From Caecitellus pseudoparvulus (lineage: Eukaryota; Protista; Bigyra: Bicosoecida), in assembly GCA_965644315.1 (NCBI GenBank), contig CBFFRQ010000161.1:1-44493 (forward strand): a stretch of DNA of 44,493 nucleotides. The letters are read 5' to 3'. The notes beneath the pieces were generated by a model that searched no databases, was not told the DNA's origin, and saw nothing but the letters and a program-made list of their open reading frames with translations. Numbering within the stretch: position 1 is the first letter of the stretch; each line of letters opens with the position of its first letter. The position numbers were made by a program, and so were the translations under genes. Shown one piece after another: positions 1-19,460 of this stretch.

Positions 1-112
1 ATGTTTCTTGCTGGAACCGTATGTCGGGCGACATACCGACATACCGCACCGGTGCCCGTATGTCGACAAACCTCTTAGAAGTGTCGGTATGGCAGATTTA
101 GCGACATTCTGA
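1..112. repeat. Left TIR and subterminal CGACAT/ATGTCG repeat array of the outer element
   Basis: Hairpin ATGTCG-GG-CGACAT at 21-34; CCGTATGTCG at 17-26 and 56-65; AGCGACATTCT at 100-110, also present at 15012-15022. Confidence 0.85.
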
Positions 113-573
113 CAAACAATTTTCTCGTTTGAGCACCCCCACCCCACCCTGCCGCGCTCCGCACCCGTAGCCCGCCCGGTGTGATTGAAGCAAGCTTTGC
201 ATGGAATGCATTTTGTTGATATTGTATCTGCTTTCTATTATTGGATTTCTGCTCAGGAGGTGGTAAGCGCGCCACGTGCACTTGTGAGAATGAACTGTGA
301 AGAGTGCAGGGCGGTATGAGGTAAAATCAGTAGCATGCATGCGATTTTCTTACTTGTTTCGGTCGTTTTGGTTCTCGTCAGCTCTCGTTGGTCTTCCACC
401 TGGGGAAACTCGCGAGGGGTGAGTGAGGCTAACGGTTGCGTTACAGCTGAAACGTGTGGACACACCTGAGCCAAATTGTGTGGGTACTTGCGAGGTTTCG
501 TCTGTCATCTGCGAAGGGGGCAATCTAAGTCTTGTTAAGGTCTCAAATCCATTTGTTTTGAATTGATGAGTGG

Positions 574-2080
574 TTACTTTCGCCTTCTGCGTGAGCGCAC
601 CCCCTCCCGCTCCTCCGCCTCCTCCTCCCCTTCTCCTTCTCGGGACCTCCTCGTGCCCCCAATGATGGCCTGTGTGCGCCCAGATGATGGCGTGGGCGCA
701 ATGCTTGTAAGTTCGGCCAGGGATCCCTCATCTGAACTCTCTTCTGGTGTTTGATCTATTGGAGACGCGCTGTGCTCCCCACCAGAAGCCAGCTCTTCTC
801 CACGATGCATGTGATTCACCACCCAGGCAAGCCTGGGGGCCGTCCACTGCTCCACGCGGAGCAAGATCCATGCACCTGCAATGATGGGAAGGAGGTCGCG
901 CAGCTGCTCTGTGCGGAGCCTGTGGAAGCCTGGACCCATGTTCACCTCGGTGCAGCTGATGAGGGGGGCTTGAAGGGACGCATGTTTACTCTTCAGTCCA
1001 GAGTTCCACGCTTTAGCACAGGCCAACCAGAGGTTCTTCATGGCTTCTTCCTCTGGAAGCAGGTCCTCATGCGACTCCTTCAGCGCCACAGTTTGGGACT
1101 GGTCCAGGAGGCGAGGGATGTGCACCGTCCAAGGTCCATCCGGGGTCATGTATGTGCTGAAGTTCTTGAAGTTCGCTGCCCAGATTCGCTTGACCTGCGA
1201 AGAAGAGAGTGTGCCCGACTCGCCTTTCCAGCTGACGAAGCACTTGAGTTCACGGGTGATGTACTCCCTCCCACAAACTGGCTTGTACAGCTTGATGTCC
1301 ACGAGCTCCAGGATCAGGGGTGGGTCGGTGCGCGGGCCTGACTCCGACCCAGCTGAGCCTTCAGACAAGTCCTTGCACTCCTTGTCTGCGCATGCCACCA
1401 CCTCCTGGGGGCGGCCCTCGATGGTGTGGTGCTGAGGAAAGAAGCGTTTTGTCCTGTTGGATCGGGTCATGGAGATTCGCACGTGGTTCCTGAGGAGGGA
1501 CTGACTTGCGAGCAAGCCATCCCCTTGACAGCACGCCTCGTCCTGCAGGAGTTCAAGTAAAGTGTCGTCATCCCCCTCGCTTTGCGTCAGAGTCAGACCT
1601 TTCTGGTGCGTCTCGTTCACGTTGATCACCATGTTATCGAGTATGTTTGCGTGACAGGAAAGGAGCCCAGCCTGCGCATGTCTGGTTGCATCGGACATCA
1701 CCCTGAGAAGGCCCTTTTTCCAGGCATCAGCCTTAACCCCTTGATCGCGAGCATTGATGACTGCTTTGCGCAGAGGGCACTGAGCAGCAATCGCGACGTC
1801 CTTGCTTGAGGATGACAGAGTCTTTCGAGAGGAGCTTGCCTTCTGCTCTTTCTCTACGCGTTCAAGTCTCTCTAACATCACCAGCAGCATCTCCAAACGA
1901 GTGGACTCGCTCAGTTCAATCCCTGTGCAAGGGAAGGAAGATATATGCGCGCCAGCTCAGCTTATCAGCTCAGCCTTGGGAGTGGGTGGCAGTTGTGGTT
2001 GCCTCAGCCGGCAAATGCAGCGCCTACCCTCTTCTGGAGCAGGAAACTCCAACTTCTTGCACAGAATTTTCGTGATGCGC
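574..2080 (-). CDS. Accessory protein of the outer transposon, unknown function, spliced; 5' exons unresolved (possibly up to ATG 2419)
   Basis: 440-aa ORF extended by a phase-compatible GT-AG intron at 2027-1923 (...PAPEE-G-IELSESTRLEM...). Ends in an acidic tract plus basic RSRRRRK (NLS-like). Divergent from the transposase. Confidence 0.65.
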
Positions 2081-2520
2081 CTGTTGTGTGCGGTGGATGC
2101 TGTGGAGTGGGGTGGGGGCAAGCATGGTTGCAAGACCAAGGGTGCGGCTTTTGAATGGGATTCAGCAAGACACACATGATGACTCCATGGCTGAGCAGTT
2201 GCTTCTCAGGGCTTTTGCGCGAGCAAGAAATGCACTGGCACTTGTCTCAAGAGTTAAAGCGTGCAGTGTAGTGAAAGTGTCACGTTCTGTCTGTGGTGCG
2301 CCGTGTTGGTTTTGAAGGGTCAACGATTTCCGCAACTCGGGCTTGCCTTCGATTGACTGGGCGTCTGGCGGACAAAACCTATTGAATTCCGAGCCGCTTG
2401 CTGCTACAACTATTCTCATAAAACCTCTGCAGCTTTTCCGTCCGTCGTTCCTCTACTCAGTGCTACTTTATCTCGTATTGCGGGTTCGACAACGCACTTC
2501 GCGGCCCTTCCGAACTGACT

Positions 2521-5500
2521 ATGGCTCATTCGCCCCTTCACGCCGAGAAGCCCCACAAGTGCGCAACTTGTAAGCGTCTTTTCAAGCGAGTATCAGACCG
2601 CAATCAGCACCTCAGGCGTAGCAGGGCGTGTCGGGCAGAGGCGGCGCGTCAACAGAGGGCATGGCTCCAACCATGCCCACTGGCTCAAGAAGAACGGGAT
2701 GATGGGGGTACCTGGGGGGGGGCTGACGACACTGAGAGCCTGTCTTTCACTGATACAGTTCTCGACCAGACACAGTTCTTTCCTGATCTGGTGTCGCAGA
2801 CAGGGGCGGGGGCCGCGTCAAGTCGGAGCCTTCCTTGCAGTGAAGGAAGTGGCTCCGACACCTCGTGGGAAGAGTTGGAAGGGGAGGAGGTAAGTGAAAG
2901 CGACGAAGGTGAGCCGGCCTTGTTCACAGGCAGGAACCTACATGCGGAGGGGGAGGCGCAAGACGTTTCAGTTGGTCGACAGCAGGCCCAGGGCGTGACT
3001 GTGTTTGACGGCGTTGGACCCCCACCCCTCTCGACAACGCGCCCGAGGGTCGCTTCCAACCTGAACATGAACGCGGTAAGATGCATCCGGGAGGTTGCTG
3101 AGGCCAGGGCCCGCTTCTCTCGGGAGGATGCGGAGAAGTTCGACTTTCTTGTGAGGGTGTATCGCACCGGGCTGTCGGCTGCGAGTGCATTTGCCATCGC
3201 TCGTGACCAGTGGGCAAAAGATGTTCACAGATTCGGCAGGGAAGGAGACCCGAGATGTAGCATGTCTAGGCCTATCAAACCACTAGACCTCTTGGCCGAT
3301 TTCCGACACAGGGCAGCATCAGATCCAGGAGTGCTGCCCTTGTGCGCTCACAAGGTTCCAATGCCCATAGGCCTTCTCACAGGCGACAGAAGTCTGGGGC
3401 ATCTAACCCTGTATGGCACAAGTATCGTCGACGCAGCGATTAATATGCTTGCCCGACTGGACCCCCTGCGGCTGCTGCCCAACATAGGGTCTGGAGAATG
3501 GGCGGATCCCGTCCTAACCCCAGGGGTTGACGTTGAAATGGGGGCAACACTCGCAGGTGAGGTCTCCGCCGCTTGGACACAGTCTGATGCCATATGCCAA
3601 GCTGCCTTTGACACTCAGTGCAGGCAACGATCCAGTGCTGGTCGTTGCAAGCCTCCACCCCCACCTCTATCGACGCCCATGCTCCGAAAGCCGGCGGTGC
3701 AGGGTGGGAGGCTGCAAGGCCTTGTCATGGCTGGCGTGCAGGCTTCTTCCCCCTCCACACTCTCCGAATTCCAAGGGGGGGAATGCGCGCGGCAGAGCTT
3801 GGCACTTACCCTCCCACACGGTGCCCTCCCCTTAGTCCTCAGTCTTTTCCTAGACGGGGCCAGCGCCGGACGGCATGGGGCACACGAGCTGACACCTCTC
3901 AGTGTTCGGTGCCTTCAGTTGCCGACCAAAGAGGCGAGGGGAGTCGCATCAGCTAGTCTGCTTGCCATGCTCCCTTCATACCAAGCCATGACTGTGGCGT
4001 CGAAGGCTGTCGAGAGAGGGGGGGCATCAGCAGCTCTCGTTAGACATCGGGCATTTCAGAACACCTTGGAAGCCATTGTCTTCAAGCCCTTGGCAAACAT
4101 CTGGGCTTCCGGGGGTTTGGCCGTCCCTGTTCCCCACGAAGCCATACAGAGTCTCCGGTCGATTGGGGTTAAGGTGACTGTGGTCCACCACGCAGGAACG
4201 AGCGTACCATATGCCCGAGTCTTGCCCGTCATCGGACTCCTAAGTTTGGACATGAAGGAAGCCTGGAGGGTCTTCAACCTGTTATCATTGTCCCAGGTGG
4301 CCTGTAGATGCAAACCGAAACAGGAAGGGACACCAACGGACTTGGGAGTGTCTGCATCTGTCCAATTACGCACGCAGTGCCGGCTACGTGGAGGCCAAGA
4401 GCACCTCCTTGCACTGCGAGGGTCACAAGGGCAAGAGCCCGGACAGGACGTCGACCAGGTTCTGGGTGGGCGGAAGTTCCCAAGTGACGTGTGTGCGGCC
4501 GAGCGATACGCGTGGATGTTCGCCGGGGAAAACCCGTACGTCGCGCGCCCTCCTGACCGCTTGCACGTCTTTGCGGCAACTATTGCGGGCGATCAAGTCT
4601 GGAAGCACTTGCAGGCAGCGATGAGGGCACGCCCAGCACGGTCTGCTCGGCCATTGAGAGAACGACAGGACATTCTGCACCAACGTCTTCGAAGCACGTG
4701 GTCCCAGGAGGTCGACGGGACGAAGCTTACCGGAGCGCTCCAGTCCACCATCCATAGACTTCTTTCCAGCGCAATGTTGAGCATGGAACAGAGACTTGGA
4801 ATTCTCCCTCACCTGGCCTGGGTCATTGGGAATGACGACTCAATTATTCCCAGCGTTGAAGTGCGACAGCTCTTTCAGTTGCTTCTTGGCACAATCGAGG
4901 TCGTGTGCCACTTCCTGTACGTGCGGCCTGTGTCTGCACCAGGTGACCCATGTCGCATCTCTCAGTGGCTAGCGAGACTGAACACTGTGTACAGTTTGCT
5001 GGCCGCACACGTCGCTCGCCGATCCCTGAAGCGAATGAGGCCCGGGTTCAGCAGACCAGGGGCGCATGCTGGCCTTCCGATGACAACGAATGCTACCCCA
5101 CCCGACCCCCAGAGCGTGGACTATCCTAAGGCACACGAGAGTCTACACTTTGGAAGTGCATTGTGGTGGTTTGGGTCCCTTGAAGCAACAGATACTGATG
5201 TCGGCGAATCATTCCACACCGTGGTCAAGGGGGCATGGCGAAGCCTCAACACAGGGAAGTCCAATCTACTCCAGCGGATCGCCGAGCGAGTACTCTTCAT
5301 AACCTGGCACAGCAGTTTTGACCTCCTGCCGACGCCATTCGAACGACGCGCTTCTGAATGGCACACAAGGTGCCTCTCTTGGCGCGCAGCGTGTGTCCTA
5401 AACCCTGATGGAGTTGCATACTCAACCCTGGCAACCCCCGTGCGATCTCGACGATTGACGTCGAGCGAAGGAAACCTCTTATCCCGCATACCTGACGGTG

Positions 5501-5598
5501 CCATCCAACCATTTAGTGCATGGACTGGCAAACATGTCTTCTTTTCCCAGTCTTTAGGCTTGTCTGTGAGGCTTCCAGCTGGGACACTTGTTGGGCCC
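2521..5598 (+). pseudogene. Plavaka-like transposase 1, N-terminal 1026 codons, interrupted by the nested element (reads through to a stop at 5715 inside the insert)
   Basis: C2H2 finger (CATCKRLF...HLRRSRAC), acidic linker, then LFLDG, SLDMKE, PPDRLH and YPKAH...FGSLEATDTDVGESFH motifs recalled as typical of Plavaka/CMC DDE transposases. Confidence 0.85.
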
Positions 5599-6176
5599 CA
5601 GTCAAGAGATTTTCTGTCCCCCCCGTACACCCCTCCAACACCACTTCGTTCCCGTGTGCGGGGGGGGTGGGCACACCTTCCCGGGCGCGTCAGAAGTTGG
5701 AAAAAGTCAAAATGACACTATTTCATGTGTACATTGTGTCAAACTCGTTTCACGCTGCGGGAGCCGCGGCGGGCCGCGCAATGGGAAGGGGTGGATTGGC
5801 GTGGTGGCGACGGAGGGCAGGGTCGGGGGCCGAGGGAGGCAGACTGATCAAATTTTCTGGTCATTCTGGCGAAAGTCACAGAGGGGGCTAAGTTTCATGC
5901 TTAGATTCAGATTATTGCACTCACGCGTGATGGTTCGCCTTGCATAGCGCAGGAGAACGCCGCAAAGTGGGCCATTTTGGGCGCCAATTTCCGCCTCCAC
6001 AGCCGGGCGGCAAACTGCCTGCGCCAACTCCCTTGCACCGCAGCGCTGGCGCGTATGAAGGCGATTTACCGCCTTTGCATTGCATTTTAAGCGCCATGCA
6101 CGATTCATTTGTCCGATGCAGCCCCCCCCCTTGACGGGCTGTCTTGGGCTGCCTTGGGCTGAGTGGCGAAGCCGTC

Positions 6177-9100
6177 TCACGTGTCCTCGCTGGCGCTGCG
6201 CTGCTTGCCGACGGGGCCCTGCAGCGCCCAGTGGAAGCGGTAAGAAGCTTCCCCTGGCTTGCCCTTCGCGATCCAAGGCGCTTCGTGCACAACGGCCGGG
6301 CCAGCTACCACACCCCCGTCACGAGCACCCACGGTTGCGCCTCGTCCTCCGGCGAGTGGTTTACCCGTGCCCACCCCTGCACCTCAGAAGGGCCCAGTTT
6401 CAGGTGACGACACAAGAGGAGGGTCTCATCGGGCAGGTAACTGCGTGCATCGTCCCTCAGCGGCGCCAGGGCCACGGCTACGTCCACCAGTGTCCGCTCC
6501 ATGAACCGCTTGCCGTCCCAGTGGATGATGCACATGACGTCGGCTGGCCCCGGCAATGGCAGCCAGTTGGTGTTGCCAGAGGGGTACCGCAGCCTCACGC
6601 CTGTGCAGAGCGTGAGGGGGGGGCGGTGTCCCGCTTCCTGTCCATCCACGACGTCGTCAGGCTTTAGTTGCACCCTGTACAACCTGCCCGAATGCCCCAC
6701 CCGCCGCTCCCTCAACCACGCCAGGGCGCTCGCCCCTGCGACGAAGGACTGCGGGAAGGTCAGTGGCTCATCAGCGCTCCTGAATCGCGTCACGATCGGC
6801 CGCATGGCCGTGCCCACCAAGTTCAGTGGCACCTCAGCGCCTGGGTCAGCAGCAGCCCCGGCACAGTCGCCGGCGACCAGGGAGCGAGAATGCAATAGGT
6901 TGTACCAGGTCTCGGGGGAGGGAGTGTAGCCTGGCGGTTGACAGTACGGCGCGCAGCTCATGGCCTGCACGAGGCACACTCTCTCCGCCAGCTTGTAGAG
7001 GACACCCTGCTTCCCGCGGTGCACTGTACGTAGCACACGGTTGATTCGAGTGTGCATGGTCTCGCCGTGGTCGGTATCCACCGCCTCCAGGCTACCGTAC
7101 CAATGCATGTCCAGCGCCAGCTGCAGCGCAATGTGCAGCTTGGGGTACGTGAGGGGTAGAGCCTTCCGGCCAAGGGAGCGCAGCTCGTTGCTGACGAGCT
7201 GGAACACGGTGGCCACACGGGCCATCCACTGGGCCAGACGGCACGCGTCACCCCGCCCAGCCACTGCCCTGCCGTACGTGAAGCGCAGGACCACGCCCAC
7301 GGCCCCATGCAGTGCGTTCAGCAGTTGGCGGACCTTGGGCGGCCCCACGACGGCGTCGTCCGTGCCCATCATCAGCGTCTGCCACCGAGTGAGCCCCAGC
7401 TTGTCCTCTGCTGTGACGGCGTTGCCGGCCGACAGCTTGACCGCCGTCTCCCGCCCCGCGCCGACAACCTGTACGCCGTCGATGCGGCGCGGACGCGGCT
7501 GCTGCATGCGGTGCATGAAGGTCGCTTGGCGATCGTCCTGCGCCCCGAGGCCAGGCGCGAGCATCCCCTGCTCCAAAGCACCCCATGTCCGGTCCCCCAC
7601 CACCCCGCTCCCCAGCACATGCAGCCTGTCTGCAGGGCAGGCCTCGTAGCCATTGCCCCCCACAAACAGCGTCGCATGGCGCTCAATGTCGCAGATATCC
7701 TCGACGTCCTTCCACCTGATCGTGGCAAGGTCGGCCTCCGCCCGCGCCTTCACGACCGGATCGGCAGACGCCACGTCACGCAGCGCGTCGGCGTGGAAGG
7801 ACGCCGAGCGCCGCGTGCAAGTCCCCAGCGCTGCCACGGTCTCGGCCATGTCGAGGGGCACGGCGTCGGCCAGCTCTTGCTGGCCTTTGCTGCGCCACGC
7901 CAGCGCGCACGAGCACCGTGGAGGCCTGCCGTGAACCGCATTGAGTAGCATCCATCTCTCAGCCGTGTCGGCGCAGATGGCGCCGATGAGCGGCCACACA
8001 CGGGCAACGAACGAAGGCCCATCGACCCCCGCCCCCGGCTCAAGGACATCGACGCCAAGGTCCCGCAGAGCGCCGACTTGGTCGGCTGCTACCGGGATCC
8101 ACAGGCCACCCTGAGCGTGGATCTCAGCAAGAGGCTCCAGCAGCACAGCGCGGAGCTGGGCCTGGTGTGCCTTGTACTTGGCGCGCTTCGCCTCCTCCGC
8201 GGTCCCTTTGAAGTCCATGTCTTTCAGCGGCATGAAGGCAAGGACTGCCGCTGACCCCAGGCTTCGGGCCTCTCGGGCACTAACTTGCATGGGCCGGACG
8301 CTCAGGGGCGTGATGCCCGTCTTCGGTTGGCGGAAAGGGTGGGCCTCGTCCATGAAGACGTTGATGACAAACGGCAGGGCGCGGTGTTGCAGAGCTGTCT
8401 GTGACGCCGCATGAGCACACGGGCTTTCAGCGAAGCACGACACGGTGCCGTCTTGGGGTTCCTGGGCGCCTGCCATCGTGTGTGCCTGAAAGCGGCCATG
8501 CTTCGTGAACGGAGCGGCCAAGGCGGGGGTTTCGTCGTCGCTCAACCCAGGCCGGTGCCTTTGGAATGCTGCACGCGCAACCGCGTCGCAGTCTGCGAAG
8601 GCGGCCTCGAGCTTGCTCGCCAGCGCAGTCCCCATGGGCGTGTCAATTCCCGACGTGTGCATGGGGTCTGGGACGCCCCTTGTGGCCCGACGGGCGGGCA
8701 AGCACTCAACAGGTATCCGAGCCAGCGAGTGGACAAGCCAATCCTTCAGCTTCACGCCGTGGATGGGCCAGGTGGCACGTGGCACTCCACGCCGGTCGCA
8801 CACGCCGGCGGGCATCTTGGCGTGCACCACCCCCGGCATGCAGATGCCAGGCAACCCCTTGAGTGTCTCGACCAAGCGCTTCATCTTCCTCTGGGGCTGC
8901 ATCGGCTTCCGTGCTCGAACCTTCGCCTGACAAGTGCTGCAGCTGGCTGTGTCTGCCATGCACTTCGACCAGAGATCGTGCTGCACTTTGAACACCGAGG
9001 CGGCACTCGCATCGGTGGTCAGTATCGCCTCCAGCTCAGAGTTCCTCTTCCTCAGTGTCTCCAGCTCTTCCGAGAGCAAGCCCACGCGTGCCCGCAGCAC

Positions 9101-9550
9101 CTCAGTGGCTGAGTGAGTGTCGGCTGGTAGAGCAGCCGGCTCGCCTGCCTCTCCCGCTGCCTCTCCCGCCTGAGCGTCTCCCCCGCTGGCCGCAAGCCCA
9201 GCAGGCAGGGTCTCCGTGGCGTCGGCCCCGAACTCGTCCGCCCCATCACTCTCGCTTTCCTCGGTCTCATAGTACTCGCTGTCTGCGTCCTCCTGGACAG
9301 GTGCTTGCGCAGCCCCAGCGTCCCCACGCGGGTGCTTCCGATGTGAAGCAAGTGTATGCTCGTAGACATCCTCCCAGATGCCGGGCGCAGGGCTGCCCCC
9401 GTCCTCAGAGTGCTTCGCAAACTTGGCCTCAAATTCGCGCCTACGCTTTCTCCTTCTGGCGTGGGTCACCTGTTGGCACTGCCTCTGAAAGTGACGGGTC
9501 AAGCCTGATTGGGTTGAGAACGTCCGCTTGCACACAGTGCACGTGAACAT
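6177..9550 (-). CDS. Plavaka-like transposase 2 with a single-base frameshift near 6313-6322
   Basis: ATG 9550 (MFTCTVCKRTF...HFQRQC, C2H2-type finger). VFMDE, CADTAE, PADRLH and YPKLH...YGSLEAVDTDHGETMH are collinear with transposase 1. The last about 45 aa (VVAGPAVV...SYRFHWALQGPVGKQR) lie in a second frame and align with the transposase 1 C-terminus. Confidence 0.85.
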
Positions 9551-9959
9551 CGTGGGTGTGGGATGCTGCTTGGCAGGGCCTGGTCCGGAGGGAGAGCTCG
9601 AGTTGCGTTTCAGTATCTGAAACGTGCCTAGGGGGCACACCAATCCGGACTTCACAACGCAACCAACACCACCGCGGCGGCAAGAAGCACACCTGCGCTA
9701 GTGGTTGATGTGCATTCGATCCCTAGCGTTTGTGAAAAGTCCCCCTGTAAGCCTGGAACGCGAGGGATACAAGGAAGCTTGCTGCGTTTTCCCTTGAGAG
9801 GGGGGTGCAGGGGGGTGCAAGGGGGGAGGGGGGGTGCCTCACGCTGCTCTGTAAGCCAGCAAGGCGCAAAGGCACATTCCAGTCCCCCCCCCTCTGTTAG
9901 TCACTTGCTCTTCTCGGCCACCTTCAGCTCTCAAGCACCCGTCTCCCCACCCAGACACC

Positions 9960-12033
9960 ATGGCTCAGCAACGCAGCGAAGTCAGCACGAGCTCAGTGCC
10001 TCAAGCCACCGCCGCCGAGCATGACTCTGCAAAGCGAGCGTTCCAGGGCGTGCATGCGCATCTTCAAAGGATTGCCTTTGAAAAGGGCAAGCCCTTGCCC
10101 ATCCCGGAGCGCAAGGTTTGGTTGGCGGGCGCCAGCAACGCAAATGGTGTGCTGCGCTGTGAAACGCTTCCCCACCACGCGCGCACAAAAGCACCAGTGC
10201 TTACCGCCCAGTCCTTGCCCGCGCCGCAGAAGAGTTCCTTCGCGCAGAAGTGCTGGGCCAGCTTGCTAAGCCGCCGCATGAATTGGACATGCCCGGTGGT
10301 GGTGGTGCGTGACATACCAACGCGAGACTAGGATGGCGTTCCCACCAGCCTTTGCCCGTGTCGAGGCGTGCGGCTTCAACGCAACACCGCCTGAGTTTAC
10401 ACGCGATCTGTGCCCCCTTTCCGCAGCAGACCACTCCAGTGGAGAGGCCAGGAGCTTCCTTGCCGCGGCCGTCCTGCCCCGCGTTCCCAACGCGGCAGCC
10501 CTCGAGGCTCCAAGCCTGACCGACAGGGTGATAGCGGCACAGGCGAGCTTGGCGTTGGATCGGGCGCTGATCTACCAACTGTACGTGTTGTACCTGTACA
10601 GTGTGAAGGAGAGGGCCCAGATGCAAGCTCAGATCAGGGAGCTGCAGGGCGCACTTGACAAGAACGGCAAGTCCAGTCGGAATTCTCCGAGTGTCCAGTA
10701 CAGCCGTCTGTCCATGTCCAATCACATGGACGCCATCGGCAGGCAGAGGCTCCCTGGACAGGGTTCGTGGACGTTTGCACAATTAAAGGCAGGGTCGGGG
10801 TGGGGGGTGCCGCCGACTACTCTCACACTCATGTGCACCAACGCAGCCCTCCGGGTACCGGAAGGGCCACTTGGCTCCCCTGACGATGTCTACGAAACGC
10901 TGATAGCGGACGCCGACCTTGAAACGCCGGAGCTAGACTTCCCTCTGGCCTTCATGCACGGCATGCCCAACGCACTGGAACAGGCGCTGTCAATCCAGCT
11001 GGCAGATGGCGCTGATCCCTGGGACGACGCCAAAGACCTGATGCGACAGGCAGACCCCGGGCAGGTGCGCGAGGCGTGCAAGAAGCTGCGCGATGCAGTG
11101 TCGCGGCTCTTCCAACCCAGCGCACTGTCCAAGGACGAAGCCTTTATGGAGGCGGTGTCTGTGCTCTGCCCCGCCAGGGAGGCGGAGGTCCTGGTCTGCA
11201 CGCGACACAGAAAGCAGCCGGCCCACGACGCATTCCTTGACATCAGCTCGCGCTTGGACGGCACGGGGCAAGCTGCCCAGGATGCTCTGCGCTACCTGAC
11301 TTGGGCGGATCGAGGGCGCAACGTGCTCTCGATGGAGGAAGTGCGCCGCAGGCAAACTGCGCGCTTTGCTGCGGTGCGCGACTTTGCCACACCGGACGCC
11401 CCGTTTGACTGCGCCACGCTCGTGGCAGTCTCCTTGGAGCAGGAGTTGCGCAGGGGGCTCGCCAAGGACGCGGGTGTGTCCGTGAGGCGCCAGGACGTCG
11501 TCACAGCGGCGGCACTGGGGGCGCTGTATGAAGCTGCGGTGCATCTGGTGGACACGGTGCGCAACCAAGCGTACAGCTTTGTACGCAGCACACCGCCGTT
11601 CCCTCACACGTGCGAGTGGCACAAGCTCTCCGCCGCCCAGCTGTACACTATCGGCGCCGTGCTCGGGCCATTGTGGACCTTCTTGCGCGGGGAGGAGGCC
11701 AGCGCCTCCACATGGGGCTTCGTCACCCGGGCCTTCCGCGCTACACTTGTGAGGGATGCCCGTGAGCGTTCGAAGCTGGCCCAAGCATGTGCCAAGGAAG
11801 CGCTTGCGCAGCACCCCGTGGTCAGCACTGACGGCAGTGCCGAGCTGGGCCCCTGCCCGGGCCAGGGATCGGATTCAGGCTCGGGTTCAGGTTCCGAGTC
11901 TGAGCATGAGCCTGGTGCCGAAGCTTCCGGTGTGCTCGGAGACGGCGGGGCGGTGCTGGGATGCGGAAGGTCCCGCGGCACAAAGCGCCCGCGCGGCGAC
12001 GCAACGCCCCCGAGAAACATGTCGTTGGAATGA
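9960..12033 (+). CDS. Accessory protein of the inner transposon, predicted 622 aa, unknown function
   Basis: Exons 9960-10146, 10230-10304 and 10427-12033 join in frame through two phase-1 GT-AG introns (1869 nt). Coiled-coil-like segment; C-terminal GS/acidic tract followed by TKRPR (NLS-like). Divergent from transposase 2. Confidence 0.72.
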
Positions 12034-13111
12034 TGATAAGTACCCTCGGTACAGGGCATCCATATCGTGTGCGTATGCCTGCTCTGAGGCTGGTGACACC
12101 GCAACACCACCCATATCCCCACCGCACGCCCGTCAGCGCAATGCAAGCTCTTCCGGCGTGCCAGCGTTCGCTTGCGTGCAACACCCCCAGCTTGGCGCTG
12201 AGGAACAGCTGCACCCCTGTGGCCCATGCAACCACCACACCACTGGAAGCGCACCCCGCCTGGCCCTTTGCCCGTGTGACAAGGAAGCAGCGGACCAGCA
12301 TCAGAAGAACCCACCCCCCCCCCCCCCTCCCCCCGTCCGCATAGGGACACTTTCTAATCCCAGCGCAAATCTGAACGGTGCAAGTCAAGTCCCCATGGTA
12401 GCGTACGTTTGCACATGGCCTTAGCCTCGGCCTGCCTGTCGCTGCACGAGTACACAGAAGTGAGCGGCGCACAGCTTGCGTGCCGGGCGTTTCGCCTGCA
12501 ACGGCATGGGACATGTCACCTCCTCCGCTCCCGCCTGTCGCCCTCTCCTGCGCAGTGAGCCGGATAGTGTCGTGAAGAGCTGTACACCTCATGGCCTGCA
12601 GACGCCATCGCAGGCTGCAGGTTCGTGCAGGGGCCTAGCACGCGGGTTCAGCATTGGCGTTGCAAAGCCGAGTCACACACAGACCCCTCTGCGTGCAGGC
12701 GCCCCCCCACCCGAGCTCCCCCTGCCAGAGCATGCCCTTTCGAGAAACTTGACCTTGTTGCATCGCGGACTGTGCTCCATGGATGGCTTCAGCGGTGCGT
12801 TGGGACAGGGGTAGCACCCGCCTATGCGCGGCGTTTGCGCGAAACGCCGTGTCATGTTCCAAGGCACCCCCGCACACTCGTGCCAGCCCCAGCGCCGCAG
12901 AAAAGACACCATTGATATGATGTTTGTCGGTACCTATTGAAAGCGCGGCAGTTTCTTGTGAGGGTGGGTGGGACTGCATGCGCCGGGCGCTGGTGCTGCC
13001 TGCCTCCAACGCCACCCCTCTGCGCAGGCGAACTCCCTCACCCGCGACGCACACACACCACCCCTCTGGCCATTCGCAGGGCCCACTTGGATGATCCAAG
13101 TATCTCCCTGA

Positions 13112-13652
13112 ATGCCGCATACTGTACTGGGATGGCCTGAGCGGTGCGTGGCCGTCATGCGCTCGTCCCCATGCCTGGCGTTGCAGCCGGTGCCTGGCAC
13201 TCCCACACCATCACCCGAGCCACTGCCGCCCCTTCACAGGAATGGAAGACCCGGCAACCTGATCATGAGGGGCAAGTCCCACCACGGTGCCAGCCAAAAT
13301 GGGGTGAGTGCGAGGGGCTGCTGCGCTGGTGCCTTGTGCAGGGAGCGGCTACGTCGTGACTGCTGGTGTCAAGGTACAGAGCCACGCGAGCCTCCTCCCC
13401 CCACCTGCGCAGGCCTTCCGGTACGCGATGCTGCAGAATAACTGGTGTACCACCCTGAATGACTTGGAGAGGCTCCCCACAGTGCTTGGCGGACTGAGAG
13501 GTGCGCGGCGGCAGAGGCGGGCGGCGGCAAAGGCGCGTGGCCTGAGGCGTGAGTGCTCCGAGGCGGGTGCCGTGGACGCAGGGCATGCATTGCAGTGCGC
13601 GACACCGCCTGGTGACAGTTTGATGGCCAGCGCGAGCTGCAAGGTGCCGTAG
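13112..13652 (+). CDS. Possible third small spliced gene (111 aa) or gene relic in the inner element
   Basis: Exons 13112-13143, 13240-13303 and 13413-13652 join in frame via strong GTGCGT..CACAG and GTGAGT..GCAG introns. An upstream intron-like segment (about 12964-13079) and an in-frame stop just before the ATG suggest it may be a relic. Confidence 0.35.
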
Positions 13653-13694
13653 ACCCCCCCCCCTGCCTGCAATGCACAGCCTGCTACCAGTTCG

Positions 13695-13849
13695 CCTGGG
13701 TACCCCCAAAGTGGGTGTTTGCACCACCCCCCCCCCAAAGTGGGTGTCTGGCCCACCCCCACAAAAAGGAGTTTGCCCCACCCCCCTATACCCCTTCGAG
13801 GGCAACCCCCCAAAGGCATGTCGCCCCCCCCCCGAAAATCTCACGACGG
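13695..13849. repeat. Right subterminal repeats and TIR of the inner element
   Basis: CCCCAAAGTGGGTGT occurs twice (about 13704 and 13733), with multiple C-runs, ending GAAAATCTCACGACGG. The left end (5615-5680) is similarly C/G-run rich. Confidence 0.75.
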
Positions 13850-13851
13850 CC

Positions 13852-14340
13852 GAGCCCCTCCTGCGAGACAGAACACTGCAGATCTTCACCAAAGTGAGGT
13901 TGCGTTTCCCATCAGGAAACACCAACATGATCTCCCTTCCAGCCTACCTCGACACCGTCGTGGAAACACCTTTCGAGGGACAGGACCGGCGAGCTTTGAG
14001 CCCAATATTGGCAGTCCTGTGCTTCGCCCCTGCACCGCCTACAGTGGCCACAGCCTCCGGAACACCAACACCGGATGCTGACAACGGCGAAGTGTACATA
14101 CTGTATACGGACCTGAGACCGACAGTCACAGATGTTTCTGGGTGGGTACGAGTCGCGAAACCGGATGCAGGCAGCCGCGTGGCGCTCATGAACTGCACAA
14201 GCATTCGTGGGGAGTCGGTGGTTGCATTGCGGCCGTCCTTACTTCAAGAAGAGGATGCCACATATTTGCACCACTGGCTTCAAGCCGGACTGGCGGGCAA
14301 GCAGCGCCAAACATCCCAGTCCAGGCGATGGAGACGATAA
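13852..14340 (+). pseudogene. Displaced C-terminal 162 aa of transposase 1
   Basis: VRLRFPSGNTN...VSGWVRV...YLHHWLQAGLAGKQR aligns with transposase 2 VRLRYPSGNTN...VQGWARV...YRFHWALQGPVGKQR. Confidence 0.9.
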
Positions 14341-15011
14341 GCCGGGCCACCTCGAAGTCTCAAGGCGGCGGACCAGTGTCCAACCCACGAACAATACCTT
14401 ACAGGTGGGGGTAGAACTTGTCGCAATGGTGTACAGAGTTGTAGGATGCAGTTGAAACAGCGCCATGGGTCACTTCCTGACAGGGTCACCCCACTCGAGA
14501 CCACCTCGAGACACTCAGAGCAGACCAGACTCGAGCCTCTGCGGGGGCACCATGAAGCGGGAGAGGCGAACACGGCTCATACTGCCCGAAAGAGCCTGGC
14601 ACCATCCAGGAGGTCATGAGAGTCCATGTGGAGCTTGCTCGCATGCCCTCCGTTGCGCGCAGCTCAAACCCTGTACATGGGCTGGCGCAACAGAGCGTGA
14701 GGGTCGCTTGGGCTGGTGATCCAGCGAACTTTGCAACTTCATATCTGGGCAACCACTGATATTCAGAGAAATCCACGCATATCAGGGAAATCACACGACA
14801 CTACTCTTCCGATTGGGACCTTAAAATTAGAAAATTATTTTTTTGGGCTGTGATCGCCTTCTTGCCAGGGCCCTTCCCAGAGGCCCAAATAGAAAACCTC
14901 ACGTGACAAAAAAATAGTCCAACACAGCTAATTACATGGAATACACCAACCCGAATACACTCTTAGTTTTTTCTGCAGGATATTCTGTGCTGAGATATCG
15001 TGAAGAGAAAA

Positions 15012-15083
15012 AGCGACATTCTACCGACATACGGTGTGTGTCGGTGTGTCGCCCGACATGCACCCCCCAAAGAAACATGACGG
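15012..15083. repeat. Right TIR and subterminal repeats of the outer element
   Basis: CGACAT/GTGTCG array that is the reverse complement of bases 1-44; terminal GACGG. Confidence 0.85.
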
Positions 15084-16860
15084 AAAGAGCCGGGAGGGGC
15101 TCGCATGGGGTGAAGCCATGGGACTGAATGATTCGCCTCAGCTGAAAGCACTCCGTGTGCTGGAGTGGGCTGCTGCAGAAGCCCGTGCAGGCACGTTTGC
15201 GCGCACACGGTGGCTTGCCCTGCTGGACGAGGGCATGCTGGTGCACATTCCCCGCCTGCAGCAGCAGCTGCGGTCACTGGCAGACGTGGAGAACAGCACA
15301 TTCATCGGGCACCGCGAGCCAGAGGGGCACTGCTCAGGGCAGCTGCCTGTCCTCGTGAGCATCAGCAGCCTGAAGGCAGTGTACTTGCCTGCCGTGCCGC
15401 CGCCCAGCCGAGGACTGGGCAGGGCCTGGGCAGAGCACCTGCAGGACTTGCTGTGGAGTCACACAGGCCACGAGGACGGGCGACGTCAGTGCAATGACGG
15501 CCTGGCGCCCAGCAGCGTGCAGGCGCTGGAGCGTGCGTTTCAGAGGCCCAGTGGTGAGGAAGGGGCGGCGCTCGCGGCAGATGCCCTGCTGGAAGTGACC
15601 AGTCCACTGCTGTCTGCATCTGCGGTGGGGCACCTCTCCAAGGTGGATGCGATGCGGCTGGCATCGCGCTGGTCGTTGTTCAGTGCCATTCAGAGTGTGG
15701 CTCCTCATGTGCTGCAGGGGGTGCAGCCGGAGTGGCTGACACCGTTGAAGGCGCCCGTGCAGCAGGCAGATGGGGAGGTGTGGCTGTCTGCCGTGGATGG
15801 GAACAACCTGCTACAAGAGCCAGTACCTGTCACTACGAAAGGCTTGCCAACAAGCGCATTCCTCGCCGGCGTGCGCAGCCATTTGAAGAAGCTATATCCC
15901 AACCTTTCGCTGAAGTCGGTCACCCTGCTCTGGTGTCGAGACTGCATCACAGCCACCGTCCTCGCATCGCTGCCCGCCCCCTACAGCAGTGTGCTGCAGC
16001 TCCAGCTGCCCTTGCCGTGGAGGCCAGACTTCATCGCCCTGCAGACAGCTCCATCATCGTCCGTCAGCTTCCACATTGCAGTGCCCTTCGCATGCAAGTA
16101 CGACACCTTGCGCAGCATGCTGTCCAGCACGGGTGCCGCCCTGGCCTCAGCGGGGGTGGTGGCCACTGTGCACGTTGGGTGGTCTGCGTGTCCGGGCCAG
16201 GAGCCAGGTGCCGAGTCAAGGCACCAGGTGGAGCTGCAGCGAGACTTCTCCACGCGGTTCATGCAGGTGCGGTTTGTGCCAGTGGCGACCCCCATGGCGC
16301 GGTCTGTGAACTGCAACGCAGCAGCTGCTGGTGCCGCTGCAGGTGCTGTGTTGGCAGTCATCGATGTGGACATGGAGGTGACAGCTGGGTTCTTCCTGCG
16401 GGCTCTGGCGCTGACACAGGAGGGGGCAACGGCCTACTTCCCAGTGGTGTGGTCGACATACAGCGCAGACGCAGTGTCAGCAGTCGAAGAATGGTTCGGA
16501 AAAGAGTTGCCCCCGTTCTCGCTGTACAGGGGAAGCTGGCGCAGCTACGGCTTCGGCATGTTCACCATGTACAAGTCCGACTTTGACCGGGTGGGGGGCT
16601 TGGACCCCGCATTCCAAGGCTGGGGCGGGGAGGACTACGCCTTCTACAAGAGTGTCAAGAAGGCCGGCATCGTCGTGCTCCGGTCAGAGGACAGAGGCAT
16701 GGTGCACCGGTGGCACCCCAAGAGCTGCGAGGGCGTGGCGCCTCAGCGGTATGCGAGCTGCATCGCATCGTGGGCGGGGCAGGAAGGGTCTCCGCTGGGC
16801 GTGCTGTTGAAGCATGCGGAGCACAAGCTGAAGCCTGAGGGTAGTGTTGGTGTGCATTGA
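15084..16860 (+). pseudogene. Transposon-interrupted copy 1 of the chondroitin-synthase/CHGN-like glycosyltransferase (3' part)
   Basis: Near-identical to 17684-19460 but lacks the first about 127 codons, including the signal anchor, which the transposon has displaced. Confidence 0.85.
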
Positions 16861-17303: not shown

Positions 17304-19460
17304 ATGGGAGTATCCTGTAAGACTGCGAGCATTGCCGGCTGCTGGGCCGCGTGCCTTGCATGCAGCCTCCTCATGTTGTTTAGCAGCTATGTCCGTCTGT
17401 CTGTGCTGCCTTTGCCTTCGACGGACAGCACACGATCGCTGAGGGTGCAATTGAATGACTCGAGCGGAAATTGGATTCTCTGGCACAAAACAAGCAAGGA
17501 AACAGCCAGTCGGCAACAAGTGCGCATTGATCCTGGCCAGCAGCTTGTCACGCCTCTCTGGGCCGTGTCCGATGCTCGTGCAGCAGACCATGTCGGCAGC
17601 CAAGCCTTCAATGCCCTGCGGTCAGAGCTGCCCACATTCGTGCTGTGCCCAAAGGGCGTCGTGCAGAGCCTGGCACCGGCGACAAAGAGCCGGGAGGGGC
17701 TCGCATGGGGTGAAGCCATGGGACTGAATGATTCGCCTCAGCTGAAAGCACTCCGCGTGCTGGAGTGGGCTGCTGCAGAAGCCCGTGCAGGCACGTTTGC
17801 GCGCACACGGTGGCTTGCCCTGCTGGACGAGGGCATGCTGGTGCACATCCCCCGCCTGCAGCAGCAGCTGCGGTCACTGGCAGACGTGGAGAACAGCACA
17901 TTCATCGGGCACCGCGAGCCAGAGGGGCACTGCTCAGGGCAGCTGCCTGTCCTCGTGAGCATCAGCAGCCTGAAGGCAGTGTACCTGCCTGCCGTGCCGC
18001 CGCCCAGCCGAGGACTGGGCAGGGCCTGGGCAGAGCACCTGCAGGACTTGCTGTGGAGTCACACAGGCCACGAGGACGGGCGGCGTCAGTGCAATGACGG
18101 CCTGGCGCCCAGCAGCGTGCAGGCGCTGGAGCGTGCGTTTCAGAGGCCCAGTGGTGAGGAAGGGGCGGCGCTCGCGGCCGATGCCCTGCTGGAAGTGACC
18201 AGTCCACTGCTGTCTGCATCTGCGGTAGGGCACCTCTCCAAGGTGGATGCGATGCGGCTGGCGTCGCGCTGGTCGTTGTTCAGTGCCATTCAGAGTGTGG
18301 CTCCTCATGTGCTGCAGGGGGTGCAGCCGGAGTGGCTGACACCGTTGAAGGCGCCCGTGCAGCAGGCAGATGGGGAGATGTGGCTGTCTGCCGTGGACGG
18401 GAACAACCTGCTACAAGAGCCGTCATTCATCTCAACAAAAGGCCTGCCATCCAATGCGTTCCTCGCCGGCGTGCACAATCACCTGCGCAGCCGCTACCCA
18501 AAGCTCTCCCTGAAGTCGGTCACCCTGCTCTGGTGTCGAGACTGCATCACAGCCACCGTCCTCGCATCGCTGCCCGCCCCCTACAGCAGTGTGCTGCAGC
18601 TCCAGCTGCCCTTGCCGTGGAGGCCAGACTTCATCGCCCTGCAGACAGCTCCATCATCGTCCGTCAGCTTCCACATTGCAGTGCCCTTCGCATGCAAGTA
18701 CGACACCTTGCGCAGCATGCTGTCCAGCACGGGTGCCGCCCTGGCCTCAGCGGGGGTGGTGGCCACTGTGCACGTTGGGTGGTCTGCGTGTCCGGGCCAG
18801 GAGCCAGGTGCCGAGTCAAGGCACCAGGTGGAGCTGCAGCGAGACTTCTCCACGCGGTTCATGCAGGTGCGGTTTGTGCCAGTGGCGACCCCCATGGCGC
18901 GGTCTGTGAACTGCAACGCAGCAGCTGCTGGTGCCGCTGCAGGTGCTGTGTTGGCAGTCATCGATGTGGACATGGAGGTGACAGCTGGGTTCTTCCTGCG
19001 GGCTCTGGCGCTGACACAGGAGGGGGCAACGGCCTACTTCCCAGTGGTGTGGTCGACATACAGCGCAGACGCAGTGTCAGCAGTCGAAGAATGGTTCGGA
19101 AAAGAGTTGCCCCCGTTCTCGCTGTACAGGGGAAGCTGGCGCAGCTACGGCTTCGGCATGTTCACCATGTACAAGTCCGACTTTGACCGGGTGGGGGGCT
19201 TGGACCCCGCATTCCAAGGCTGGGGCGGGGAGGACTACGCCTTCTACAAGAGTGTCAAGAAGGCCGGCATCGTCGTGCTCCGGTCAGAGGACAGAGGCAT
19301 GGTGCACCGGTGGCACCCCAAGAGCTGCGAGGGCGTGGCGCCTCAGCGGTATGCGAGCTGCATCGCATCGTGGGCGGGGCAGGAAGGGTCTCCGCTGGGC
19401 GTGCTGTTGAAGCATGCGGAGCACAAGCTGAAGCCTGAGGGTAGTGTTGGTGTGCATTGA
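17304..19460 (+). CDS. Type II membrane glycosyltransferase, chondroitin GalNAc-transferase/synthase-like (CHGN, GT7 C-terminal domain), 718 aa
   Basis: N-terminal hydrophobic anchor; IDVDM (DxD), AYFPVVWSTY, WRSYGFGM, YKSDFDRVGG, FQGWGGED, HRWHPKSC. Confidence 0.85.
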   Translation: MGVSCKTASIAGCWAACLACSLLMLFSSYVRLSVLPLPSTDSTRSLRVQLNDSSGNWILWHKTSKETASRQQVRIDPGQQLVTPLWAVSDARAADHVGSQAFNALRSELPTFVLCPKGVVQSLAPATKSREGLAWGEAMGLNDSPQLKALRVLEWAAAEARAGTFARTRWLALLDEGMLVHIPRLQQQLRSLADVENSTFIGHREPEGHCSGQLPVLVSISSLKAVYLPAVPPPSRGLGRAWAEHLQDLLWSHTGHEDGRRQCNDGLAPSSVQALERAFQRPSGEEGAALAADALLEVTSPLLSASAVGHLSKVDAMRLASRWSLFSAIQSVAPHVLQGVQPEWLTPLKAPVQQADGEMWLSAVDGNNLLQEPSFISTKGLPSNAFLAGVHNHLRSRYPKLSLKSVTLLWCRDCITATVLASLPAPYSSVLQLQLPLPWRPDFIALQTAPSSSVSFHIAVPFACKYDTLRSMLSSTGAALASAGVVATVHVGWSACPGQEPGAESRHQVELQRDFSTRFMQVRFVPVATPMARSVNCNAAAAGAAAGAVLAVIDVDMEVTAGFFLRALALTQEGATAYFPVVWSTYSADAVSAVEEWFGKELPPFSLYRGSWRSYGFGMFTMYKSDFDRVGGLDPAFQGWGGEDYAFYKSVKKAGIVVLRSEDRGMVHRWHPKSCEGVAPQRYASCIASWAGQEGSPLGVLLKHAEHKLKPEGSVGVH

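Follow-up and report, generated by a model that had tools for sequence, protein, structure and literature searches.

A two-gene transposon nested in the transposase gene of a related element, and its empty-site counterparts, in Caecitellus pseudoparvulus

The Caecitellus pseudoparvulus contig CBFFRQ010000161.1, whose whole length of 44,493 nucleotides is referred to here as the window, carries one transposon nested within another. An inner element of 8251 bp interrupts the transposase open reading frame (ORF) of an outer element and is bordered on each side by the dinucleotide CC, its target-site duplication (TSD). We are highly confident that this arrangement arose when the inner two-gene transposon recently inserted at codon 1026/1027 of the outer transposase and duplicated 2 bp of the target. 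The features on which the argument turns are the following.

2521–5598, forward strand: outer transposase, 5′ piece, codons 1–1026, encoding an N-terminal zinc finger and the DDE core
5597–5598: left copy of the TSD, CC
5599–13849, reverse strand: inner transposon, 8251 bp, with the ends CAGTCAAGAGATTTTC...GAAAATCTCACGACGG and its transposase opposite to the outer one
6305–9655, reverse strand: inner transposase ("transposase 2"), 1116 amino acids as read
13850–13851: right copy of the TSD, CC
13852–14340, forward strand: outer transposase, 3′ piece, codons 1027–1188 plus stop, with the conserved C-terminal domain and a VRLRFPSGNTN motif

As it stands in the window, the ORF at 2521–5715 reads ...PAGTLVGP up to base 5598 and then runs through 38 codons of the inner element to a stop at 5715. 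Its outer portion measures 3078 bases, or 1026 codons ending in GTLVGP, and the 489 bases of the 3′ piece (162 codons plus stop) begin with EPLLRDRTLQIFTKVRLRFPSGNTN in the frame of the ORF at 13672–14340. Once the 8253 bp of 5599–13851 are taken out, that is the element together with one CC, the two pieces share a single frame of 1026 + 162 = 1188 codons. Both pieces are also colinear with the inner transposase: the head piece aligns over 760 residues with residues 185–896 (32% identity, E value 2e-93) and the tail piece with residues 1014–1098 (E value 5e-9). The latter match confirms, as homology at the C-terminus, the alignment of the restored tail with transposase 2 that an earlier sequence-only reading of this DNA had put forward.

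The same reading had claimed that excision of the inner element and one CC restores an 1188-amino-acid transposase, and two intact paralogues with the same length and junction now bear this out. We searched the 30.6-Mb, 215-contig genome assembly, in which the window is contig C161, with 599 bp from the left and 599 bp from the right of the insert. Two further copies of the outer element were found in which these flanks abut, one on contig C147 (96–97% identical) and one on C68 (95–96%). The C68 junction, CTTGTTGGGCCCGAGCCCCTCC, is exactly the predicted empty site and that of C147, GGGCCTGAGCC, departs from it by one synonymous C>T change, so that no uninterrupted copy disagrees with the prediction in length and only this silent base differs in sequence. 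In each, the same ATG opens an uninterrupted ORF of 1188 codons, which aligns to the two window pieces without gaps at 97% (C147) and 95% (C68) amino-acid identity. The sequence GGGCC[C/T]GAGCC is present once in each copy, and the CC is therefore single in the empty paralogues.

The uninterrupted form is also found outside this genome. Two metagenome proteins of about 50% identity, P0001 and P0002, are gapless at the junction with the same spacing (LPAGTVIGD-KTAQ... and LPAGTHIGG-QPLP..., respectively). Among public-run contigs matching positions 3600–7600, which are evidence of presence and not of absence, one contig each from a marine metagenome (X5) and from another organism (X9) follows the window to base 5598 and then continues with GAGCCCCTCCC..., the uninterrupted sequence. 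Other X5 contigs contain the inner left end, and there the foreign flanks stop at 5599. The possibility that C147 is merely the allelic empty haplotype of C161 was considered and ruled out, as the right flanks of the two diverge exactly at the element terminus.

The ends of the inner element are defined by its siblings. Its first and last 400 bp each have many matches across the genome, and copies that are 99–100% identical and have the same terminal bases were found on C40, C18 (two copies), C43 and C12. At least five copies start with CAGTCAAGAG and end with ...CTCACGACGG at identical bases, and because they begin and end at exactly those positions, the element can be delimited as 5599–13849 of the window. 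It has terminal inverted repeats (TIRs) in which 13 of the 16 terminal bases are inverted-complementary. The dinucleotides that flank individual copies on the left and on the right are listed below.

Window copy: CC and CC, a matching 2-bp TSD
C40 copy: CA and CA, a matching 2-bp TSD
C18a copy: AA and AA, a matching 2-bp TSD
C18b copy: TG and TG, a matching 2-bp TSD
C43 copy (older): TT and CA, no matching 2-bp TSD
C170 copy (older): TG and CA, no matching 2-bp TSD

In no matching pair does the duplication reach a third base, and the chance of four matches out of four is about 1.5e-5. A TSD of 2 bp had already been proposed from the sequence; with four different dinucleotides in four independent young copies and a single CC in the empty paralogues, a TSD of exactly 2 bp is well supported for this element.

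A few copies have peculiarities of their own. The C43 flanks share CATGCT(T/G), a 6-of-7 match, which may stem from an atypical 7-bp duplication or from copies having recombined. On C40 (146219–172612) the ends of the inner copy lie 26 kb apart and the similarity stops 1105 bp from the left end; this copy probably carries a further nested insertion. On C18 (167095–184069) two near-identical copies lie in the same orientation, 470 bp apart.

Some observations weigh against the nested-insertion reading. The older copies on C43 and C170 lack matching 2-bp flanks. Near position 6313 (6305–6320) the inner copy of the window is without one C that is present in five of five siblings (C18a, C18b, C43, C12 and C40). 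With the extra C, the inner transposase continues into a tail, ...YRFHWALQGPVGKQR..., that matches the outer transposase end YLHHWLQAGLAGKQR; the window copy may thus carry a frameshift, and possibly be defective, or the missing base may be a homopolymer assembly error. Finally, no contig listed from the runs of the source organism bridges the filled junction. Since these contigs are short and break at repeats, the filled junction rests on the assembly and on the precision of the TSD and of the termini.

This last point would also fit an assembly chimera of two repeat families, and the contig is indeed small and largely made of repeats, with both C161 and C147 breaking inside the outer left TIR. 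A chimera nevertheless appears extremely improbable, because both joins fall exactly at inner termini common to at least five other copies and because a misjoin would not yield a 2-bp duplication of a sequence that is single in the empty paralogues. One could also imagine that the outer copies on C147 and C68 lost the inner element by precise excision and do not show the pre-insertion state, given that cut-and-paste elements do excise and that parsimony does not fix the order of events from three copies. We find this hardly credible: it would require two independent footprint-free excisions, and the relatives of about 50% identity have neither insert nor gap. Moreover, the outer copies differ from one another by 3–5% whereas the inner copy and its siblings are only 0.05–0.4% apart (0–4 mismatches to the C18, C12 and C40 copies over about 1.9 kb at each end, or 99.6–99.95% identity). 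With a divergence so far below that of the outer copies, the insertion post-dates their split.

The age of the insertion deserves separate consideration, since the two halves of the outer ORF might be open simply because stop codons are rare in DNA of 60% G+C, in which case the insertion could be old. Only 3.5% of single substitutions in the outer ORF would create a stop, and for this reason the open halves say no more than that the age lies within about 2.4% neutral divergence. An old insertion is still very unlikely, given that the inner copy matches its siblings almost base for base and that other samples have the site uninterrupted. In addition, the changes private to the interrupted ORF (27 synonymous and 16 nonsynonymous) still look selected and are no more relaxed than those of the intact copies; among the three outer copies, the synonymous divergence (dS) is 0.07–0.11 and the ratio of nonsynonymous to synonymous divergence (dN/dS) 0.17–0.23. 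We take the insertion to be recent because of the youth of the inner family, which is probably still active. Recency had been deduced earlier from the open halves; these are a weak clock, and the deduction stands on the better evidence of sibling identity and of the uninterrupted contigs.

We propose the following sequence of events. The outer element is a two-gene cut-and-paste transposon with an accessory ORF and an intronless 1188-amino-acid DDE transposase; the anatomy is of the cut-and-paste type, with TIRs, a TSD, an empty site and multiple near-identical copies. A related but distinct inner element entered between codons 1026 and 1027 in the opposite orientation; its family's transposase presumably cut the two strands of the outer ORF with a 2-bp stagger at GGGC|CC|GAGC. 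The insertion parts the DDE core from the conserved C-terminal domain and would leave this outer copy without a full-length transposase and presumably without function, while the two other copies, on C147 and C68, should still be able to make the full-length protein.

The remaining parts of the two elements are as follows.

1–15083, forward strand: outer transposon, about 6.83 kb once the insert is subtracted; left terminus about 5 bp before base 1; C147:1–6829 is colinear
1–44, forward strand: outer left TIR, truncated by the contig start
574–1896, reverse strand: outer accessory ORF, 440 amino acids, head-to-head with the transposase
10309–12033, forward strand: inner second ORF, 574 amino acids, in a position equivalent to that of the outer accessory ORF
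15036–15083, forward strand: outer right TIR

The outer TIR is about 45 bp long, and its arms at 21–44 and 15036–15059 are 92% complementary. The right terminus reads ...AAGAAACATGACGG at 15083. All three outer copies end in ...AGAAACATGACGG and then pass into different flanks, which makes them independent insertions rather than alleles. On the left, the window starts with ATGTTTCTT... (ATGTTTCTTGC...); apart from five bases missing at the outset, this is the right end in reverse complement, and the outer element can therefore be placed at window (−4)..15083. Contigs C161 and C147 begin 5–7 bases inside the outer left TIR, evidently a break made by the assembler at the edge of the repeat. Alternative outer boundaries at 1458 and 14706, suggested by comparison with C68, were rejected: C68 is without 1–1457 and 14707–15057 but keeps the true right terminus, resuming past 14706 with ...CCCCCCAGAAACATGACGG, which matches window 15058–15083, and has thus undergone internal and 5′ deletions. 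The C68 copy (355921–360941) has lost the left 1.46 kb, comprising the TIR and most of the accessory gene, together with 351 bp near the right end; its 1188-codon ORF is intact and under purifying selection.

Contig C76 stops within the N-terminal portion of a glycosyltransferase gene, and the gene resumes at 15084, directly after the right terminus, with about 12 bp missing between C76 and C161. The outer copy therefore probably sits inside one copy of a tandem array of CHGN-type glycosyltransferase genes (15034–16860 and 17304–19460). The outer accessory ORF is 32% identical (E value 3e-55) to a 453-amino-acid ORF that L054, a metagenome relative, carries at the corresponding place and in the same orientation, and no Pfam domain was found in it. 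Homology between this ORF and the 574-amino-acid inner ORF is not supported, the best local match having an E value of 0.005 over 38 amino acids. A motif like ATGTCGG(N)CGACA is repeated sub-terminally in the outer TIR regions (window 21–70 and 15000–15060), and recurs, in the form of a near-palindrome, in L054 at 6880–6938, past the transposase gene (2837–6232). These repeats may be transposase-binding sites.

To which family the two transposases belong is less easily settled. We infer that both are very divergent, Plavaka-like members of the CACTA/Mirage/Chapaev/Transib (CMCT) group with its RAG1-type DDE core, in which Plavaka has been placed by Kojima 2025 (PMC12730594); membership in Plavaka proper is unproven. 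In Pfam, the Plavaka profile (PF18759) gives 16.0 bits (E value 0.007) with the inner transposase and 22.7 bits (6.7e-5, profile positions 80–317 of 325) with the relative P0006, and no match with the outer transposase; an N-terminal C2H2 finger is matched as well. Only five true relatives emerged when 1.84 billion cluster representatives were searched exhaustively with a profile. A word-index protein search led from the outer core to two relatives and from P0006 only to itself, with no transitive bridge to annotated Plavaka, and a sequence-profile search of the PDB gave nothing meaningful. In a protein atlas the top clusters near the outer transposase are all Plavaka (score 0.97, 212–214 of 256 features), with a recognition value below the usual level that makes this a lead.

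A structure model of the transposase core shows an RNase-H-like order of strands and helices in which D445 ends strand 1 and D577 follows a long strand; blocks of 10 residues average 70–90 in predicted local distance difference test (pLDDT) at about residues 11–30 and 71–160 and are lower between. In a Foldseek search with this poor model, RAG1 occupies ranks 1–27 (E values 0.014–0.25, probability up to 0.82). With VIA-align, RAG1 reaches Z scores of 8.4–8.7, BbRAGL 6.9 and HzTransib 6.5, the latter two within the top 7. The alignment opens at model residue 18, equivalent to RAG1 587, and D445 (model residue 31) would by this offset fall at about D600. Across six aligned members, D445, D577, C595, H682, H872 and E896 are invariant, H872-x3-H876 is present in five of the six, and C597 is present in most members and absent from P0006. 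D445, D577 and E896 are predicted from their positions to be the catalytic residues. The two cysteines follow the second D by about 18 residues, and the histidine pair precedes the E by 20–24 residues. Apart from a spacing of 1 instead of 2 in C595-x-C597, this resembles the set of two cysteines and three histidines (2C+3H) described for the CMCT clade (PMC12730594).

Several of these results speak against a Plavaka-like placement. None of the matches reaches the Plavaka gathering score of 26.3, the structure model is of low quality (mean pLDDT 55, with a root-mean-square deviation of about 15 Å to RAG1), the cysteine pair is C-x-C and not C-x2-C, and the termini, C[A/C]GTC...GACGG (CAGTC.../...GACGG in the inner element and [CCGTC]ATG.../...CATGACGG in the outer one), match neither Plavaka A nor B. 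With all Plavaka signals sub-threshold or indirect, and with termini and cysteine spacing unlike those of published Plavaka, the transposases might instead belong to another superfamily such as Kyakuja-Dileera-Zisupton (KDZ). We regard this as unlikely. RAG1, BbRAGL and Transib are the best structural matches, and the 2C+3H set is spaced from the second D and the E much as in RAG1. No KDZ Pfam family is matched by the transposases, and the TSD is 2 bp here compared with 8 bp for Zisupton and Dileera (PMC12730594). Returning to the Plavaka-like reading, we consider it somewhat better than an even bet that these elements represent an undescribed and currently active Plavaka-like lineage in a marine stramenopile-like picoeukaryote, with its own terminal motif, the C-x-C variant, a lineage-specific C-terminal domain and conserved accessory proteins.

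Nested transposons are commonplace. What the window offers is a natural before-and-after pair that establishes where the inner element ends, that its TSD is 2 bp and that it is recent. These in turn form the basis for annotating the family genome-wide and for arguing for its continued mobility. The range of Plavaka-like, RAG1-type transposases is also widened, to a lineage of marine protists with almost no relatives on record. Such elements could be of interest for tracing the CACTA/Transib/RAG1 radiation or as native transposon tools for marine picoeukaryotes; the interest is modest and is that of a well-delimited, apparently active element in a very sparsely sampled lineage.

In comparison with known systems, the logic of TSD, TIRs and empty site by which a younger element is seen to break an older ORF is the same as in the nests of transposable elements of maize and fungi; there is no difference in principle, and the present example is a clean, textbook one. 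RAG1, Transib and ProtoRAG (BbRAGL) are the best structural matches of the core model, but that model is poor, sequence identity is only 9–12% and there is no RAG2-like partner; the TSD of Transib is 5 bp, as against 2 bp here. The EnSpm/CACTA elements are alike in their short TSD (2–3 bp), termini beginning with CA, a DDE core that bears C..C and H..H motifs and a frequent tendency to nest, and unlike in that the present elements have no CACTA/CACTG terminus, no EnSpm Pfam sequence match and a second gene unrelated to TnpA. With Plavaka the elements have in common a long transposase of about 1100–1200 amino acids, a 2-bp TSD (2 bp in PlavakaA and 2–3 bp in PlavakaB; PMC12730594), TIRs and one or more accessory genes beside the transposase. 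On the other hand, published Plavaka termini are TGT..ACA (A) or CATCA..TGATG (B), in contrast to those found here, and the accessory proteins have no known domain, with no TET/JBP or PAG-like domains detected. The host, too, is a marine stramenopile-like protist rather than a fungus or a red alga, the latter being home to giant Plavaka elements (bioRxiv 10.1101/2025.02.11.637652).

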